Source: Podarcis vaucheri (lineage: Eukaryota). Taken from it: 64,000 nt of DNA. How positions within the stretch are numbered: the first letter of the stretch is position 1; the number at the start of each line of letters is the position of its first letter. The position numbers were made by a program, and so were the translations under genes. Shown piece after piece: positions 1,580 through 45,716 of this stretch. The notes beneath the pieces are model-generated. The model was not told where the DNA came from. It was given only the letters and a program-made list of their open reading frames with translations, and did no database searches. Location: assembly GCA_965113315.1 (NCBI GenBank), contig OZ220373.1; one strand, given 5' to 3'.

Positions 1580-1711
1580 TGAAAATCCTATGGCTTCCTA
1601 GATGCTGCTAGACTACAACTCCCACCAGTCTTGACCAGCGGCCAGGACTGCAGAGGCTGATGGGACTTGGCATCCAGCAACGTCTGGAGAACCACAGGTT
1701 CCTCACCCCTG
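1580..1711. mobile_element. Degraded palindromic hAT-type MITE
   Basis: Internal inverted repeat (ctacaactccca...tgggacttggc) ending ggttcctcacccctg. Same family as 22877-23005. Confidence 0.55.
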
Positions 1712-24913: not shown

Positions 24914-24992
24914 GATCTTGTGATCGATTATGCAGGGCGGAGCTTCCTTGACACCCACCCACCCCAATATTTCATTCATGTTCGCACCCCTG
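24756..24992 (+). mobile_element. hAT-type MITE containing a (TG)n tract, at the upstream edge of the CAMK4 CpG island
   Basis: cataggagccaactcctaggggcc...atgttcgcacccctg, homologous to 26724-27064. Degenerate 8-bp TSD tcttgtat/tttcgaat. Confidence 0.75.
24868..24910. repeat. (TG)n microsatellite
   Basis: Directly visible, about 21 units. Confidence 0.95.
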
Positions 24993-25089
24993 TTTCGAAT
25001 CCAAAGGAAATCGCCTTTTGCGCGGGACTGGTGGCTTTGCAACCCGACCCTCGTAGAGAAAGGAGTTACGAGGATGGCGAGGGGTCTCT

Positions 25090-26720
25090 CTCTAATTTGC
25101 TCCCATTGCTGAAGCGCCCAAGAGTGGAGCGGAGTGTGGAGCGCGAGCCGCCTCCCACCACCGGGGCGAGGAAGGCGGGGCGCATTAGGGCCCTGCGGGA
25201 AAGCGCCCCAAGCGGGGTCCCTCTGCCCGGCTTGTCTGGGTCTCGCATACACACCCCGCCCGCCCGCGCGCGCCGAGAGTGGCTGGCAGGCAGGCAGGCA
25301 GGCAGGGCAGTGGCTGCGCTGAGCCGAGCCCGGGACGGCTTCCAGCCGCCGCTGCCTTCGTGTGTTGCGATGGCAGCGGCGGCGGCAACCCCCTCATTCG
25401 ACGAAAGGAACCTCTGAAGCCCGCCCGGCTCCCTCCACCATCCGTCCACTTGGCACACACGCGCGCGCATTCACTCATACACGCAGGGGTAGAGAGAGAG
25501 AGAGAGGCGCGCGCCCTCTCGCCTTCCCTCACGTTACGCGCTGCGCCCAACCTCAACTTGCCCTCCTCGTTAGGCAGCTGCCAAGAAGACGCGAAAGGTG
25601 GGCTTCTGCTCGGCCAGAGCCGCTTCTCTTCGGGGCGACGCCCCCCCCTCCACACACACACACACACACTTTCGGTGTGTCCGGGCGCGCGCGCGCTAGA
25701 GGTGGCGCGCGCGCGCTCCTCCCGCAGCCTCCTCCCCAGCTCCCTTTCCGTTCCGCCAGTCTCCGAGCGCCTCTCTTGCTGCTGCTGCTGCGCCCGCCTC
25801 GAAGTTTGGCCGGCAGCTCCGGCTCCTCAGGCAGCCGCCGCCGGCAGCGCCAGCAAGCAGCGCCGCTCTCTCGGAGCCACCGCCGAGTCCGCCTCTCTCG
25901 CTTAGCCGCCGCTTTGTTCCTCTCGCTCCCCCTCAGCCCCTGAGGAGCCGGACGCCCGCGCCGCTGCCGCGCGCCGCAGCATGCTGAAAGTCACCATGCC
26001 CTCGTCGTCGTCGTCTTCGTCGTCGCCCTCCTCCGCCCCCACCTCGTCCACCGCCGCCCCCGCCCCGACCTCGGGCCGGCCCGGGGGCGCCCCTGCCGCC
26101 GCCGCCGCCGGCCCCACCGTCGTCCCGGACTACTGGATCGACGGCTCCAACAGAGACACCTTGGCCGACTATTACGACCTGGAGTCGGAGCTGGGACGGT
26201 GAGGAGGCGGGAGATTGGCGCGGGCGCCGCCGGGGAAGAGGAGGTGGCGGGGCGTGAGGGGAGGAAAGCTGTGCAGGGCTCTCGGGAGGGCAACATCCTG
26301 GGTGCTGCTGCTGCCTCTTGCTGGCGCGTCAGGGTGGCGGCAGCGGCGGCGGCTGCCCCCTTATCACTAGGCAGGGTGGCGCTGGGGTGCCCAGGCTGAG
26401 GGAGGCGTTCCTGGACAAAGCGGGGCGGGGGGCGGCCAAGGGAGGGGAGGGGAGGAGGAGCTGTTGGTGCAGCAGCAGCAGCAGCCGGGGCGCTTGTCGC
26501 CAGGCGAGGCAATGCAGGGGGCACAGCAGGGCCGGCGAAGTCCCGCGCGGTGCAAGGGATTGTGGGGGTGCGCGGAGCGGTCCAGGCAGAGACCGAGAGA
26601 TCGTGGTTCCGCAGAGAGGAGACATTCCTAGACAGCCGTGTGGGCGGCCAGCAGTCTCGCTTGAGAGCGGGGGTGGGGAGGGGAAAGACGGCCAGGTGGC
26701 GCTGGCGACTGGAGAGTTAG
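25090..26720 (+). promoter_or_regulatory. CAMK4: CpG island / promoter and 5' region of CAMK4
   Basis: Very GC- and CpG-rich block surrounding the CAMK4 ATG, with GC boxes and an RFX-like GTTGCGATGGCAGC at 25364-25377. Confidence 0.85.
25981..26198 (+). CDS. CAMK4: CAMK4 (calcium/calmodulin-dependent protein kinase IV) first coding exon
   Basis: MLKVTMPSSSSSSSSPSSAPTSSTAAPAPTSGRPGGAPAAAAAGPTVVPDYWIDGSNRDTLADYYDLESELG(R) with donor CG|gtgagg. Matches CAMK4 MLKVT...VPDYWIDGSNRD...ESELGR and lies downstream of WDR36 as expected. Confidence 0.96.
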
Positions 26721-26723
26721 GAC

Positions 26724-27064
26724 CACAGGAGCCAACTCCTAGGGGCCGAGGATCCCTTCGATCCTCCCGATAAATGAAGGGTCCGCGCACCCTCCCCCCA
26801 GTTGATGAGCATTGCTATTCAAATGGTATGTGTCTTGTGATCAGTTATGCAGGGTGGGGTTTATCCAGTGGCGTAGCGTGGGTTGTCAGCACCCGGGGCA
26901 AGGCAAGTAATTTGCGCCCCCTAACCCGTGGATTTGCGCCCCCTAAACCTAACCCCCAGATGTTGCGCCCGGTGCGGACGGCCCCTCCTGCACCCCCCAC
27001 GCTACGCCACTGGGTTTATCTCTCCCCCACCCCAGTTTTTTTTATTCAAGTTGGCACACCCCTG
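26724..27064 (+). mobile_element. hAT-type MITE (same family as 24756-24992) interrupted by a nested MITE
   Basis: cacaggagccaactcctaggggcc...agttggcacacccctg. TSD gttaggac/gttaggaa. Confidence 0.8.
26866..27012. mobile_element. Young 147-bp hAT MITE nested in the previous element
   Basis: Perfect 17-bp TIR cagtggcgtagcgtggg and perfect 8-bp TSD ggtttatc (26858-26865 and 27013-27020). Confidence 0.92.
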
Positions 27065-32890: not shown

Positions 32891-34129
32891 ACCACATGAG
32901 AAGGCTGGGTTACAATATCTAATGTAGAGCCTACCACTTTAGGATTCCACAACTTCATTCTGCTACTTGTGTAGATCCAGGCTCAGTCTTGTCTTAATAT
33001 AAGCAATAGCAATGGACAGTAGTCTACTGTTTAGGCAAACCACGGTGCTTCTGCAGTTGATTATGAAATGGCAAAGAGCTGCTTTCAAATGGCACATGTA
33101 AATCATGATTCAAACACTCAGTCTTTTGGATCATGGCCAAAGCTAACACCATCCACTTCAGAGAAGGTCTCTACCTTTTTCTAGACATAATGCAAATTCT
33201 CAGGATTAGAAGATTTCCCTGTAAACTAGGATACCTCCGGTGCCATCATTGCAGCAATTCAACAACTAATTAATTTCCTTTTAGTTATCAGGTATTCATT
33301 CCCTTTCGTGTGTTACCTCTGAGTATTTGGGTCTCTAATCTGGGTTTCTAAAAATGAAGCAGCACTGAACAGTTTGTAAAAAGTATTAGCAGGAAAATGG
33401 AAGGCGAAGTACAATTGTTCCAAGACACCATTAGTATATCAGAGGCGGTTCTCTCACTTCCATGTGAGTTACTGCCTGTTTTTCTGCTGAGTTCAACTTA
33501 GATATCTTCCATGCATATCTTTCAATACCTTGGTGGGTGTCATAGTTAAAAATTTCTTGATTTTTCCTACCCATGGTGCACAGTACAGCTATAAAAGAAA
33601 GAATTTGAATGGCCATAAGATAAGAATAGCTGTAGTCATTGTCGCTGTTTTATCATACTGTGCTTCCAGCTTGTACAAGATCTCCAGTACCTCTTGAAGG
33701 AGACTGTGAAACTGGGCCAGTGCTATCTGGGGAACCATAAAACTTGCAATATATTAAAAAGTGAATGAACAAGCCCTTAGAGATTGATCAGCATGAAATG
33801 CAATGCTAAATGGATGTTAATGGGCTATCCTTAACTCTCATTAGATTGAGCAACAATCTGCAGTGCAACAATTTAGTCTTTATGGTGCCACAAGACTCTT
33901 ATTTGCTCAGCCTAAATGTGCATTGTGTACCTTTGTGCATATGGTTCAGAACTTTGCTACCTGCTGAGAAAACCTTTCTTTTGAAGTGGAGAGGGACCAT
34001 AGAAGTTGAGCATATGCTGTACATGCAGTAGGGTCCTGTTTGCACATCACCCCCAATCTCTGAGCAGTGAGAGATTCCAGGGGGTTCCAGGTGCTTTACG
34101 CAAGGTTCATGCTCTCTTTTGGAAATGAG

Positions 34130-37841: not shown

Positions 37842-38794
37842 TACTATGCACCTTGACTTGCAAAGGGAGTCTTCATCTGTTGCTCTGCCTCAGTCAGCAA
37901 AATATATTGGTCAGACATGATAGTACCAAAACCTAGACGGGCATTTGTGCACCATAAGGTCCTACTGAAGCAAATGGGTCTTCAAGAGATGCTGAAAGCT
38001 TATCACCATGCCAGTGGTAAATTATGGGAGAGGACATTCCACATACCCCCGCAGAATAGGCCTTTTGGTTGCTGAATTTCAGATTTCCCTATGTTGTGGG
38101 ACAACCAGAATTCAGTGCATCAGCCGCTGAACTTAGCACATGGACAGATTCATGCTGGAGGAATGCTCCTTCAAAAATGCAGGTGACAAGTTGTTTAGGG
38201 CTTTGTAAGTCATTGCTGGTGTACCCTGAGTATACTTGAAGGACGTTACATGTACTGAAATCAGAAGGTTCAAAACACCATACAACCACATCCAAAATAT
38301 GGCACAATTCAAGAACCCAGTTAAATGGATTGATTCTATGGTATGAAGTTGATTTTTGACGATGACATGAACTATGGTAAGTCTCTGTCAGTACCTATCT
38401 ACTAAGAAGTCAATCCCAATTGGACTTCCAGGTAAGTCTGTATAAGATTGCAAATGCAGCCTATTTTTCCTGCATTATTTAAGATTTAAGATGCAAGATT
38501 TAAGATTTTGTATGTAGTCTTTGATACCTGATAAACTCATTTAAAAATGTTTCTACTTTCCCCCTATCTTTTATATTTAACTTATAACTAAAATAAGAGA
38601 GAGAGAATAGTGGATGTGTCTAACATGGTGTACTTTTTCAAGGCACATTCCAATAACCCTTGTAGCACACTATGGTCCATGAGACTATCTCTATTGTGCA
38701 ATCTTTGTAAGCTTCCCTGGGGCATCTCAATGGCCATGTGAGATATTTAGTGCTGGCTCACATTATCCTTTTTTGTGTGGTCCAGCATGATACT

Positions 38795-38936
38795 TAGAAT
38801 CATAGAGCTGGAAGGGACCACAAGGGTCATCTAGTCCAACCCCCTGCAATGCAGGGATCTTTTGCCCAACATGGGCAACCCTCAAACCCATGACTCTGAG
38901 ATTAAGAATCTCATGCTCTACTGACTGGCCTATCCC
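38795..38936 (-). mobile_element. SINE with tRNA-Lys-derived head and CR1-type tail
   Basis: Same family as 20734-20855, in reverse orientation. Confidence 0.8.
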
Positions 38937-40865
38937 AGTCAGTGTCTTCTTCTAGTGTCTTTTTGTTTTAACTTCTATTTCTATGTGTGTTTCCAAAAAA
39001 CTGAAAATACACTTTTGTTAGCATCCTCTTTTATGCTGGTGAGTTAAATGGGTATCTCTTGTAATTGCTACTGTTGGTATTATTATTATTTGTATATAAC
39101 ATGCTATATTTAAATCAGAACAAACCCTTCTGTGCCCAGCATTGCAACTGTTAGGTAGACCATATGTTAATAAAAACATTTCATTGTAAGTAAACAGTTT
39201 ATTGCATTTGAAAATAACCAGTCAGGCTCAAAAAGACTTTCACCAACAGCACAGGCTTGTATGATGCGTAGAAATTATTATCACCACTCAATTGCATTTA
39301 TTTTGTGTATTATATTTTTTAAGTAATTGACACAATGGCCACATTCACACATAAAGCTAAGCAAAGTTGTGTGGTTTGTTTAACCCACAATGTGCACAAT
39401 CACACAGCTCAAATGCTCTTATTTTGCTCTTTCTTTTGTCTTGCAAGGAGCAACAAACTATGAGCCTTGACGTAGTGTGATGTCCAAACCATTGCACTTT
39501 GTTTTTTATTAATCACTGCCCATCTCAAAACCACATGTCATTAAAAATATAGTAGTGCTAACAGCATTTATACCAATGGAGACTGCAAAACTCTTCCATC
39601 CTTCTAAAAAAATGTCAGAGTTTCTGTGGTCTGAGAGAAGATAGAAGAACCACAGAGGAAATTCAGAAAGGCTGTAATTGCATGATGGTGTTGTATGGAT
39701 GTCTTGCAAAAAGTGAGTGAACAAACCACAGCAATTTCTCGGTGAGCTTCTATTGTGGAAGCACCGTTTCAGCCTTGAAAGTAATGTGTACTAAGAAAAC
39801 GATATTATACTAATGGATGGTTTTGATTTCTGAATATGCACAAGCCTCACGTGAAAAGAGAGCCAACTGCAATTTTCAGTAGTGTTTATCAGTGCTTTTG
39901 CTGATTTTAAAGTTCTGCTGTGTGCTTCTGCTTTTATTTTTCTAAGATGAAAGATAAATCGGTAAGAATTGCTATTTAAACACAAGCATTTTTAAATAGG
40001 CAGTGAAGTTAGAGGACCTGCAGGTGTGTGGTGCAGAAAGCAGATAAATTCTTTAAAATAGTTTCATGGAGGTGGTTTTGAGTAGGCTGGATAGCAATAA
40101 AGGTCTAGGAATTGTATACCGTGAAGTGTAGCAGTATTTATTTACCTGTCATTCAAAACCCCCATCCTTCTGCTATACTTAGAAACATGCCCATGTAGCC
40201 CACTGGTGGGCATGCCCACATCTTTCTTTTAATAAAGAATGACTACATAAGGTGTTTGAACTTTTAAATCTTCTCATTCCTGAGATAATCTTCAAAACAC
40301 ATCTCCAATTGCCAATGCAGATTACATAAACCTGGTACAGGAGCCTTGCAGTACTGTTTAGGGCTCATGAGATGGTGGGAACAGGGAGGTTATAGGATGG
40401 GGTAGGTAAGGGAATATATTTTTTCCTCTTTCCCACTAGCCTTGAAACCTTCGTCAGCCAAGCAGATGTTTATGAAGTGATGCTAACTGGTGGGATAGAT
40501 ATGTCAGTTTGCATTTTTTAGTGCAGAAAATACACATCCGATATGTAGAGATCTTTCCTATTCTAATTAATTCAAGAGGGTTCTGGAAGCTTCTCTTGGT
40601 GTTTGGGTTATTCCTTCAGAGAAGCTGAGTACAGCTGGCTTAAACTGGCTCTCTTATCTCTTTCTGTCAAGGCCATGCCGACTATAGAAGTAGGGCCAGA
40701 AGGAGCCTGGGTTCCAGTTTCTTTTTCTATCTCTTTTCCTTCTGGTGTGGTGTTCTGTACATAGTATGCTTTGTGTTAAGGTTTGGACTTATTATAAGTT
40801 ATTGTAAGTTTAAGTTAAGTCTGCTGCAACTGGATTTTTTTTGGACTGTGCCAGTTGTGAATGTA

Positions 40866-41093
40866 CAGTGGTACCTCGTATTAAGAACTTAATTCATTCT
40901 GGAGGTCCGTTCTTAACCTGAAACTGTTCTTAACCCGAGGTACCACTTTAGCTAATGGGGCCTCCCGCCACCATGCAATTTCTGTTCTCATCCTGAAGCA
41001 AAATTCTTAACCTGAGGTAGTATTTCTGGGTTAGCGGAGTCTGTAACCTGAAGCGTCTGTAACCTGAAGCGTCTGTAACTCGAGGTACCATTG
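40866..41093 (-). mobile_element. Tigger/pogo-type MITE, family A (reverse orientation)
   Basis: TA|cagtggtacctcg...cgaggtaccattg|TA. Confidence 0.9.
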
Positions 41094-41574
41094 TATTGGA
41101 TTTGTGACCATTTGCCTCTGTAGCCGTAAAGCTCTGCTGGATGAAATATAATTGCCCCTGGTCTATTTTTTGGGAATCCCGCAACACATTTAAGTTGTTA
41201 CTCTGCTAACTATATGTTGGAATCTACTCTGGATCAACACTGAGTAGAATATCAATGACAGGATAAGCACCAGGGCAACAGTTCTTGATAAAGTAGAGGC
41301 TAGGTGATGAAATGTAAAAGTTTAAGCCACCTAGCTCTCTACAACGTCACTAGCCAATTTAATTTGAGGAAGATGAACTGACTAGGAGTATATTCACATA
41401 ACCGTGGACTATGCTTTCAGTGCACTCGCACATGACATTAGCCAAATTCCATATTGATTCTCCCATTTCTTGACCAGCACTGCTTCAATCCAACTGGAAA
41501 ACTGGATTTGAAGTTAGAGGTAATGTGAACATACCTTAACAGCCGCTGTGCATGTGCAGATGAGCACCCATGCA

Positions 41575-41825
41575 CAGTGGCGAAGCTGCATGCTCTGGCA
41601 CCAGGGGTGGAGAGCAGGCGTGGGCGTGAGTGGTGCACGTCCCGGGGCTATGGTGCGCATCCTGGGGGCGTGGCACGTCGCCCCGTGGGGTGTGGCATGC
41701 ATCCTGCGGGCCTGGCTCCCGGCATGGTGAGGGCGTGTGTGGTGCCTGTCCGGGGGCAGCTGCGATGGTACCCCCCTCCCCGATGGTGCCAGGGGCGGTG
41801 TGCTCTCCCCGTTCCTCTGCCAGTG
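41575..41825 (+). mobile_element. GC-rich hAT-type MITE
   Basis: cagtggcgaagctgcatgctctggcacc...cctctgccagtg. TSD cccatgca/gccatgca. Homologous to 57237-57464. Confidence 0.8.
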
Positions 41826-42554
41826 GCCATGCACAGATGACAGCTTCATGAATAGAACTTCTAAGGAGGTTGCATGATTGGGAAACCCAAAGCACCCTGT
41901 GCGTCAGGTGAAGGCCTCCTCACCCCTTATCTGATGTGAGCACCGTGCAAATGGGGTTCAAAATATGGGGGTGACCATGCCGCATTTTAAGCTGCTAATG
42001 TGAACAAATGCTAAGCAGGAGTTAAACCCATCCCAAGTTATCCAAGAACCTTTTATCTTCAAGTCAGGATGTGACCATTTTAAAGTTTAAAAAGGTTTCT
42101 GTTCTTGAAGGAGTGGCAGTGTATATACATCACTACAGTGGTACCTCGGGTTACATACGCTTCAGATTACATATGCTTCAGGTTACAGACTCCGCTAACC
42201 CTAAAATATTACCTCGGCTTAAGAACTTTGCTTCAGGATGAGAACAGAAATCGCGCGGTGGCGGCACAGCGGCAGTGGGAGGCCCCATGAGCTAAAGCAG
42301 TGTTTCCCAACCTTTTTTGGGCAAAGGCACACTTGTTTCATGAAAAAAATCTCGAGGCACACCACCATTACAGCCCGGTGACATCAGCACGCAGCGTCAC
42401 GCCGGGAGGGACATGAATTGCTAGCAATTACATAATCACCTCCTTGAGGGCCGGCTCATCTTCTCCGAAGGCAGAACCCCATTAATTAACAGGACAGACT
42501 CACACCATAGCCAAGACGAGGGGGGAAAACCTCAGTCATGCACAGTCATGCACA

Positions 42555-42765
42555 TGTGGGGGCTAAATGAGGACGAAGACCGGGCAGAGAGCAGGGTTCA
42601 AATCACCCCACCTGGCCAGGACAATCCCTGGGTGCTCCCTTGGGCCACTCGCCTGACCCACCTCGCAGGGCTGTTGTTGCGAGGATAACACGGGGAGAAC
42701 CACGCGCGCCCCCGGGAGCTCCTTGGAGGAGAAAGCGGGCGATGAATGCAATGCACGAAATATAT
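42555..42765 (+). mobile_element. Degenerate tRNA-derived SINE carried inside the hAT cargo
   Basis: gggttcaaatcacccc...ccttgggcca...cctcgcagggctgttgttgcgaggataa...ggagaacc...gagctccttggagga. Same family as 52773-53290. Confidence 0.65.
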
Positions 42766-43330
42766 GAGAGGCGACCAGGTTTTGCAGGTGAGGGCCCCCC
42801 GCCAACCTCCGCTTCCAACACCCGGCGCAACGACGCCGAAGTTTCCCCCGGGCTCGGCTCAGGGAGCAGCGCTGCTCCCCCCCGGCTCCCCTTCGCCCTC
42901 CCGGCTCTCTCTGCCGCCCACTGGGGACCCCCCTCACCTGCCAAGTCCGGAGCGCCGGTGGAAGTTGCATGCATGCATGCAGGGCGCCGCGTTGCCATTG
43001 CATTGCACTGCACTCCATGCAATGCCTGCACGCATACATTGCCTTGCACGCCCGCCAAGGGGTCTCCCCGCGGTCCGATGCGTCCCCTCCGGTGCGGATG
43101 CAGCATTGCAAAAATAAAAACCCCCTGACGCAGCCCTACCTGGGGGGCAGCCTCCGCCGCTCCGCCTCCGCGGGGATCCCCGGGCTCCATCCTGCCGCCC
43201 GATCTCCGCGGGGGCGCAGGCAGGCTGCGCGGGGTCTGCGCGGAAGAGCCCCTGCCCGCCCAGCCGCCGCCGCCGCGCTCATTCCATGGCCGGGAGAAGA
43301 GCGCTTCAAACAAAACGCCCGGCCCGCCAG

Positions 43331-43351
43331 GCCACGCTGGGAAACGTAGTT
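43331..43351 (-). promoter_or_regulatory. ZNF143/Staf (GFY-Staf) motif inside the hAT cargo
   Basis: Minus strand AACTACGTTTCCCAGCGTGGC versus consensus RACTACAATTCCCAGMATGC, within CpG-rich DNA. Confidence 0.6.
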
Positions 43352-44594
43352 CGCGCACCCCGCGTGGGCGCAGAGCCCAAGGGCGAGGGGACTACGGATC
43401 CCGGCAGCCCCCGCGCCGGGGACGGAGGGGGAGAGGCCGGGTGCAGGGATGGAGGGACGGGTGGGCGAGCGAGTGAGTGAGTGGCAGCCGCCAAGCCTTG
43501 GCTGAGAGCCAGGAAGGGCCTCCCCGGAGGAGGAGGAGGAGGGAGGCGCAGAGCGGGAGGGAGGGAGGGAACCCCAGGGGTCATCTAGTGACGGCGCCCC
43601 AATCGAAAATTTGACTTTAAAAAAAAATCTTTCAAATTTTTTAATTTTTCCCGCGGCACACCAGGCAACATCTCGCGGCACACTAGTGTGCCGCGGAACA
43701 GTGGTTGGGAAACACTGAGCTAAAGTGCTTCAGGTTAAGAACAGTTTCAGGTTAAGAACGGACCTCCAGAATGAATTAAGTACTTAACCCGAGGTACCAG
43801 CGTAGTGCTTTAGAACTTGAGCTCCAAAAAGAAGAAAAAGAAAAAAAGACCATCTGTCCCAGTATTACAACACCACCCCTTGTAAAACCTGGCAATAATT
43901 CTTGGCAAAGGGATATTGTTTAAAATATTTTATTTTCCAGGAGGAATAACAAGCATTAGGGAACATTCAGAACTGTGGAAGGAACAGTGGTTTGTAGCAG
44001 GTAGCCACTCAGTTTTGCCATTTAGCATTTTAGTTTCTGGTTTGATTAATTATTTACTCATTTGTTTTATCTCTATGGCACTTCATATTCATGTGAGTCC
44101 CCAAAGGGTTTACAACCAATCAGAAGCAACAGCATAAAACATCATTGTTACAGCACGCATGCACACACACACACACGCACACACACAATCACAATTACAA
44201 TGCCTGGGTCAGTTAAAGCTGACCAAACAAATCACATACTGTAATATTAATAAAGTGATGCAATGGGAATTTATGCCTGTAAACATGACATGGTGAGAAT
44301 TTTGTTGAACATGCACGTGGCACAGAGACTAAAATTTAATATGCAAGGAAATCCATTTTGATCATGAAACACAAGCAGAAAGGGGTACCAGGAAATCACA
44401 TGCATTAAATAAAGGCCATGGTAACCATCTGTTCATAATAATTGAATTGCTACTGAATATAAACTAAAAAGGAAGGGAAGAAATTGAGTATAATAGACAG
44501 CATTTCCAGTTAAACAAATACCTGTTTCAGAAATACAAACGGAATCTTCTCCAGATTTAATCCTTTTGTCTTTTATGTCTAAAGAGTATAAATC

Positions 44595-44825
44595 ATTTGT
44601 TGTGCATATTTTCTATTAAAATTTCTGTTTTACAGTTTAGAATATTCATTTAAACAACCTTAAAATGTCAATGACTTTCCTTCTTCTCTTGCCATGGTTC
44701 ATTTTGCATGTATAAATCCCTGCATATTTTACATAAACTAAACCATTCAGTAATCCATTATTGCATCTGTCAAAACTTGTTTACACTGCTGAATTTATCT
44801 TAATGCTTCCAATGTTAAGAGTATA
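44595..44825 (-). mobile_element. Probable LINE 3' UTR fragment
   Basis: T-rich block resembling the reverse complement of a recalled lizard L1 3' end. Not verifiable here. Confidence 0.35.
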
Positions 44826-45716
44826 AGTCATTTTTCTTCCTCAAAGATTTTGCTTAAGCCCAAGAACAAAAGCTGTGAAGAAGATACACTTCTTGACAGA
44901 AAGTCATCTGATGTAATCCCAGACTATTTGTATTAAAGTGGATTTTCATGGAACGTTTAAATGTTACAAAACAAAAAAAAGATATTTATTTTAAAAATAA
45001 TGCTAATAATGTTATAATGTTGGAAGGCTATGTGAGTTTACTCACCTAACCTTTTTATACTTCTTACAGTATAGTTATTAAGATTCTAACATACAAATTA
45101 GGGAGAATGTGATGAACCCTAAAACCCACAAAACATCATTGATGTGGCTCCACAATGAGATATGCGCAATTCTTACCACATGGCTAATTCTAGTCACTAA
45201 CAGGCATAGTCCTATGCAAACTTACCTAAGATTGAATTCCACATAATAAAATGGAACTGACTTCTGAGTAGACACACATAGGATTTTGCTGCAAGCTGAT
45301 ATGTCAAAAGCTGACCCATATAATATCACTAATTACCTTAAATCTCAGCTCTTTGAGTCATAGTAAGATTCATAACCTCACTTTTCAAAGTAATATATGA
45401 ATTGCACACTGGAATCAATAGATAAAGCATGCGTGAGTTCTTGAAAATTATAATCTAGGTCATGGTACTATGAGCATAACTCTGCCCTCACTAGCATATT
45501 TTGAAATGCTTGGGGTCAAAAGTCTGTGGCGGGTGGTGGTGGGGGAACTAGAGTGCTCTAATATTTGATTGAGTTAAAGAAGAACAGGCACTGCTCCACT
45601 GCAGCACTTTGCACTAATGTAGCTCTGGCATAAAGATGGACAGTTAAACAAGCCATATTTATTGGCTGCTGGCTTTATTTGAAGCTTCGAAGGAATATAT
45701 AGGAAAGAGAGCATTA

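Follow-up and report, generated by a model that had tools for sequence, protein, structure and literature searches.

A non-autonomous hAT element with a CpG-rich body in CAMK4 intron 1 of Podarcis vaucheri, probably an ordinary copy of a high-copy lizard family

We analyzed a stretch of 64,000 nucleotides from the lizard Podarcis vaucheri (assembly GCA_965113315.1, contig OZ220373.1), referred to below as the window, with positions counted from its first letter. The window contains the first two exons of CAMK4. Exon 1 lies at ~25980-26197 on the plus strand, where a frame passes through DYWIDGSNRD and on to ESELGR and is followed by GTGAGG, and exon 2, at ~56071, codes for GATSIVYRCRQKGTQKPFAVKILKKT, the kinase glycine loop. 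A transposon of the hAT type occupies positions 42298-43717, and because it lies between these two exons it is inside CAMK4 intron 1, as an earlier reading of the letters by themselves (the sequence-only reading) had also placed it. That reading had interpreted the transposon as a recent Pack-type element carrying the promoter and first exon of another gene. We found that its interior is the usual body of a non-autonomous hAT family that is high in copy number and present under at least seven organism labels, and we consider it likely that the element is one ordinary, moderately young copy of that family. The CAMK4 promoter coincides with the window's large CpG island (~24950-26900), and CAMK4 exon 1 contains a long serine run after MLKVTMP.

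The element is a genuine cut-and-paste insertion of the hAT type and has no transposase. It is bounded by 15-bp terminal inverted repeats (TIRs) that are 100% complementary to each other, CAGTGTTTCCCAACC at the left end (42298-42312, plus strand) and its perfect inverted match at the right end (43703-43717, minus strand); within the window, perfect matches to CAGTGTTTCCCAACC occur at these two ends only. Immediately outside both TIRs stands a perfect copy of the 8-mer AGCTAAAG (42290-42297 on the left and 43718-43725 on the right). The insertion splits a Tc1/mariner-type miniature inverted-repeat transposable element (MITE) of ~230 bp, whose left part (42131-42297) was aligned with intact paralogues and whose right part lies at 43718-43812, and BLASTN found at least eight further related copies of this MITE in the window. 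When six paralogous copies were aligned, the halves of the split MITE met at a single 8-mer, AGCTAAAG, which one of the six replaces with AGCTAAAA at the same position. Since a single 8-mer in paralogous MITEs is the picture expected of an empty site, the two copies of AGCTAAAG flanking the element represent a target-site duplication (TSD). Compared with the hAT target consensus (nTnTAnAn / NYYTARRN), AGCTAAAG agrees at T4, A5, and A7 and has a G at position 2. At the orthologous site in other species, the MITE flanks had summed depths in the millions and no contig bridged the site. These data confirm the perfect TIRs and perfect TSD of the sequence-only reading. The same reading's statement that the interior lacks a transposase also held; a Pfam scan of six interior open reading frames (ORFs) of at least 123 aa returned no domain.

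The abundance of the interior was assessed by mapping four public runs onto positions 41300-44700 at 90% likeness: X1 (whole-genome contigs from organism A), X4 (DNA from organism D), X15 (~91 million letters of contigs, also from organism D), and the RNA run X23. Summed contig depth is not equal to copy number, and "thousands" of copies is used here as an order of magnitude only. In X1, the unique flanks had depths of ~83-114 (~95 overall), while the interior bins ranged from 514,771 to 1,034,226, the left and right arm bins reached 1,069,991 and 1,833,974, and the host MITE reached 8.7-15 million. The interior was therefore 0.5-1 times as deep as the arms, similar to them, and exceeded single-copy depth by three to four orders of magnitude; each variable site within the element was covered by 26-128 different contigs. 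X1 also contained an internally deleted variant of the family in which 42476 is joined to 43554. The element was likewise present in X4 (interior bins 21,333-44,647; left and right arm bins 225,003 and 84,629; host MITE 1.05-1.93 million), though the unique flanks were near-empty there (0-1.4 in most bins); in this run the left arm was ~5 times as abundant as the interior.

Organism D also supplied contigs that cross the boundaries between the arms and the interior. In X15, from which the flanks were absent, contigs of 788 nt (42384-43158; 11 differences and 2 gaps), 423 nt (43139-43555), and 140 nt (43526-43664) matched the element, the two longer ones at ~98-99% identity, and a contig from X4 (43529-43603) spans the junction between the interior and the right arm (43588/43589) as well, so that both arm/interior junctions are spanned in this organism. 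In addition, a 1016-nt contig from X15 matched solely at 42298-42376, its match being bounded at the first base of the TIR, outside which it has a different flank. More than half of the stretch's sampled 31-mers were contained in 20 runs from 11 studies under 7 organism labels. An interior as deep as the arms, together with junctions common to another organism, identifies the interior as the family body. It does not behave as a captured piece added to the usual body, and the depth, the contig counts, and the shared junctions contradict the view of a special and recent event in which a Pack-type element took up the promoter and first exon of another gene; run mapping found instead the contrary outcome that the sequence-only reading had itself spelled out, namely an interior that is no more than the usual consensus of a non-autonomous hAT family with many copies. 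When the element was compared with the window by BLASTN, only the host MITE recurred, and neither the arms nor the interior had a second copy; an exact 26-mer from the interior had no match among genome contigs and viral contigs, and a text search of the literature for the TIR string returned no match. Organism D frequently shows a further family variant, with GCCTCC (6 bp) inserted behind 43149; it was present in 8 of 15 RNA reads and in one contig of X15.

The interior (42421-43588) has a GC content of 0.667 and an observed/expected (o/e) CpG ratio of 0.73, compared with ratios of 0.39 across the window and 0.28 in the right flank, which bears out the earlier description of CpG-rich DNA in CpG-poor surroundings. 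Its CpG-island-like core, at 42770-43590, has a GC content of 0.71 and a ratio of 0.76, and composition of this kind (GC 0.67-0.71, o/e 0.73-0.76) extends over more than 800 bp. Within it, the Staf-type/ZNF143 motif reported on the minus strand is indeed present: ACTACGTTTCCCA, at 43338-43350, is an exact fit to the M4 consensus ACTAYRNNNCCCR of the ZNF143-THAP11 type. A second exact fit, ACTACGGATCCCG, lies on the plus strand at 43391-43403, divergent from the first and 40 bp away. Two M4 matches were thus observed in the interior where 0.015 were expected, and none of 5000 block shuffles reached two; across the window, four matches to ACTAYRNNNCCCR were observed against 0.48 expected. Two articles describe M4 and the ACTACA-extended ZNF143 site (PMC5006282, PMC3627581). 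Among the features of the element, only the M4 pair within CpG-island DNA is not explained by chance. The two exact matches to ACTAYRNNNCCCR outside the element are at 1612-1624 (plus strand) and 33534-33546 (minus strand). A small nuclear RNA or other RNA gene behind the Staf-type motif was considered and rejected, with an Rfam scan of 41000-45000 returning a single chance microRNA-like match (E 0.81).

The remaining promoter-like and host-like features of the interior carried less weight. On the minus strand at 43140-43190, the proposed first exon can be read as described, with an ATG at 43190, 17 codons, and a donor-like CAG/GTAGGG at 43140/43139, but at least one such arrangement of ATG, open frame, and donor arose in 27% of composition-matched shuffles; the cassette is at chance level and therefore carries no weight. 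A 251-aa minus-strand frame that contains the 17-codon peptide had no relative at E ≤0.001 in a word search of proteins of 138-439 aa. The segment at 42555-42765 (plus strand) is GC-enriched and SINE-like (short interspersed nuclear element), a label read from its sequence, with a B-box-like GGTTCAAATC; no second copy was found within the window, and ARAGORN found no tRNA in 38000-44500. Because its depth equals that of the rest of the interior, this segment is a piece of the family body. A SINE-like end fragment on the minus strand (43563-43588) matches 38813-38838, the end of a SINE-like repeat at 38790-38940, at 22 of 26 bases, with no likeness beyond 43588, the last base before the right arm. 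The truncated SINE tail of the sequence-only reading is thus partly supported. Contigs of organism D from X15 and X4 cross 43588/43589, and the truncation is therefore a family-wide feature. The left end of the repeat at 38790-38940, GGAAGGGACCACAAGGGTCATCTAGT, is the sequence that recurs truncated at 43563-43588.

We also compared the CAMK4-intron copy with the majority sequence of its family. It differs from the majority at 18 or more element sites, counting the best-supported ones (76 more differences lie beyond these), and the majority letter has a share of at least 87% at 16 of the 18 sites and of 63-65% at the other two. The divergence of 1.3% from the majority is accordingly a lower bound. 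At 10 of the 18 sites, a CpG of the majority is replaced by TpG or CpA in this copy; CpG positions make up ~17% of the element but 56% of these changes, ~6 times the per-site rate elsewhere, and the family majority contains more CpG than the CAMK4-intron copy does. As such CpG decay is the signature of germline methylation, this copy is probably methylated, and the substitution pattern is indirect evidence that it has not been protected from germline methylation.

RNA was examined in X23 as raw reads from an unspecified tissue, with 12% of the run read. Coverage was 0.7-20 per first-mate direction in all interior bins except 43466-43579, with no consistent strand bias; the bin at 43124-43237 had 7.4 versus 8.5 by strand, and there was no peak over the putative exon. 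A splice joint at 43140 was absent among the joints listed for this run (183 more lie beyond these). The ratio of MITE to interior was ~80-300 in the RNA, compared with ~25-90 in X4 DNA. The interior was thus not enriched in RNA relative to the MITE when judged against DNA of the same organism, a result that fits passive read-through where copies are located within transcribed regions. In the purine-rich (GGA)n bin at 43466-43579, coverage was one-sided (first mate plus 26.4, minus 0.7), while the neighboring bins were balanced; this stretch, read on the minus strand, is a long pyrimidine tract followed by AG, and at 43503 the family-majority C was present in 23 of 25 X23 reads. The one-sided signal could reflect cross-mapping or an exonized copy elsewhere.

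The arms connect the element to other hAT transposons. The left arm (42298-42420, plus strand) has GGCACAC subterminal motifs at 42326 and 42356, and the right arm (43589-43717, plus strand) has them at 43655, 43677, and 43686 together with a perfect palindrome, CGCGGCACACT/AGTGTGCCGCG, at 43674-43695; 5 of the 10 GGCACAC heptamers in the window fall within the two arms. The element terminus, CAGTG, conforms to the YARNG terminus of PMC3014272. Scanning metagenome contigs with the right-arm palindrome identified 14 unrelated eukaryote-like contigs that share the terminal ends only (46-90 bp, ~67 in most, at 78-89% identity to the right arm). With the likeness restricted to these ends, the 14 contigs were rejected as relatives of the interior. 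In three of the contigs, L002, L013, and L007, the related ends continue into TCTAGA, TCTAAA, and TGTAAA, respectively. On the AT-rich, eukaryote-like contig L004 (Ga0307474_10052559), positions 349-2987 are bounded by the TIR CAGTGGTCCGCAAAC at both ends, and these ends align to the respective arms of our element with GGCACACT invariant; this is apparently a complete hAT element. It contains an intact ORF of 631 aa (2554 to 659, minus strand), and ORFs or fragments homologous to its protein are found in L001, L002, L005, L007-L011, and L013. Against Dimer_Tnp_hAT, the L004 protein and its L001 homologue scored 17.6 and 21.0 bits (cut-off 21.4), and both also matched DUF4371 and the Spin-doc zinc finger; all of these matches fall just below threshold, concordant and weak. 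A PDB sequence search with the L004 protein returned no match. From these likenesses, the arms are part of a widespread hAT lineage, while the interior is private to the lizard family.

The element is of the kind of the "orphan" non-autonomous hATs of Anolis carolinensis, in which eight such families have only their TIRs in common with autonomous elements (Novick et al. 2010, PMC3014272). It resembles hAT-N3_AC and hAT-N4_AC of Anolis in its 8-bp TSD and YARNG terminus, its TIR differs from that of hAT-N3_AC, CAGTGGTTCCCAACCT, at 1 of 15 positions, and it shares with the orphan families a copy number of hundreds to thousands and an interior unrelated to autonomous elements (PMC3014272). It is longer (1420 bp versus 600-732 bp) and, unlike the Anolis orphan hATs, has a CpG-island-like body with two M4 motifs. 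With the Pack-TIRs and Pack-hATs of animals it has in common a TIR-bounded hAT shell around DNA that does not look like transposon and possibly includes the 5' end of a gene. Pack-TIRs are, however, defined by an identified parental gene, and only 4 of the 370 reported from animals are multicopy (Tan et al. 2021, PMC8277862); a frog example, hAT-N8_XT, has three copies and carries a piece of the CAPSL 5' untranslated region (PMC8277862). The present element, in contrast, is a composite and highly repeated, and because no parental gene was found and its copy number is of a different order, we did not class it as a Pack-TIR. Its M4 motifs were also compared with the M4 (ACTAYRNNNCCCR) and SBS2 elements bound by ZNF143, THAP11, and HCFC1 (PMC5006282, PMC3627581). 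The motif fit is exact, the surrounding DNA is CpG-island-like, and the divergent pair resembles bidirectional promoters, but the counterpart of M4/SBS2 elements is a single-copy promoter, whereas here the motifs sit in the body of a transposon.

Several origins of the interior have to be weighed against these results. A recent, low-copy Pack-type capture of a promoter and exon 1 from a single TIR-less donor, now acting as an antisense promoter in CAMK4, would explain the perfect TIRs and TSD and the promoter-like motifs. We regard it as highly improbable, because an interior that equals the arms in abundance and far exceeds single-copy depth, junctions common across organisms, at least 18 differences from the family majority with CpG decay, low interior RNA on both strands, and the missing 43140 joint among those listed all speak against it. 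The interior might alternatively descend from an autonomous hAT of the lizard itself, as a deletion derivative that kept the regulatory 5' region and the first exon. Consistent with this, the transposase gene of L004 is on the minus strand and starts 433 bp in from the right end, which bears the palindrome, and its polarity is shared in our element by the M4 motif, the donor-like site, and the ATG, which lies 527 bp from the right end. The L004 protein, however, has no sequence likeness to any frame of the element, SINE-like fragments lie within the interior, and in L001 and L013 the gene has the opposite polarity relative to the palindrome end, which makes the argument from position weak; we therefore consider such a remnant improbable.

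A Pack-hAT origin at the level of the whole family is a separate matter, as it concerns where the interior came from and does not conflict with an ordinary high-copy family. The family founder would have captured the bidirectional housekeeping promoter (M4/ZNF143-THAP11 type) of a host gene, perhaps together with a first exon, and would then have amplified into the thousands. Two divergent M4 motifs separated by 40 bp, far in excess of expectation, the CpG-island composition that is richer still in the family majority, and the SINE-like pieces, one truncated at the arm and one further inside, which suggest host genomic DNA, make this origin a possibility to be taken seriously. It remains doubtful in our view, since no donor was found, the 251-aa frame has no relative, the ATG and donor lie within chance, no strand-specific RNA peak stands over the putative exon, and such a family would be an extreme outlier where animal Pack-TIRs are nearly all single-copy (PMC8277862). 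The stronger form, a Pack-hAT with a true bidirectional housekeeping promoter in thousands of copies across a lizard clade, beyond any animal Pack-TIR known, appears unlikely. We conclude that the element is probably an ordinary copy of its non-autonomous hAT family. Some points weigh against this conclusion. Both the divergence and the share of CpG changes were counted in part, with the 76 further differences outside them, and the CAMK4-intron element is the one full copy whose TSD was read. Two M4 motifs so far above chance are unusual in a non-autonomous DNA transposon and make regulatory activity of the interior conceivable; such activity may have been invisible to one RNA run of unspecified tissue.

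An ordinary copy of this family could have arisen as follows. The body of the family would be a composite of SINE-like pieces and a CpG-island-like stretch with two divergent M4 motifs, most likely formed by a single uptake of host DNA, through gap repair or template switching, before the family amplified; such an ancestral uptake would account for the SINE-like pieces and for the truncation at 43588. Copies would have been transposed in trans by a hAT transposase that recognizes the 15-bp TIRs and the GGCACAC subterminal repeats. One copy entered AGCTAAAG within the Tc1/mariner-type MITE of CAMK4 intron 1 by cut and paste, giving the 8-bp duplication seen at its ends. The 1.1-kb CpG-rich interior and both junctions, being the common family body in several related lizards, are not cargo acquired at or near this insertion. 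The CAMK4-intron copy would subsequently have lost CpGs by deamination, and the substitutions it carries, together with the missing RNA signal, suggest that it is now methylated and inert.

Other repeats and flanking sequence in the window were noted during this work. A GC-rich patch at 41528-41830 (up to 72.5% GC) consists of loose GGTGC/GGGGC-type repeat units, and the summed X1 depth of 20,316 in the bin at 41528-41641, compared with ~100 nearby, indicates another multi-copy repeat just to the left of the MITE. At ~12400 on the plus strand, an open frame with a reverse-transcriptase motif of the LLDLSAAFDTIDH type is probably a fragment of a long interspersed nuclear element. On the unique right flank (43771-44142), the X1 contig and the window disagree at 5 of 372 bases, and no alternative allele was present; X1 therefore comes from another individual than the assembled animal or from a close relative of it.

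At the level of the locus, the element has little importance; it is one decaying copy of a common intronic repeat, with no sign that it initiates antisense transcription in CAMK4. The family is of modest interest, as a transposon body that is CpG-island-like, contains two M4 motifs, and occurs roughly thousands of times could have distributed ZNF143/THAP11 sites across the genomes of lizards. If a promoter were identified as its donor, the family would far exceed every Pack-type element known from animals in amplification. Were that donor a true housekeeping promoter, the genome would have been seeded with portable promoters or sites for looping factors, and open-chromatin cargo may have aided the family's escape from silencing and its mobilization.

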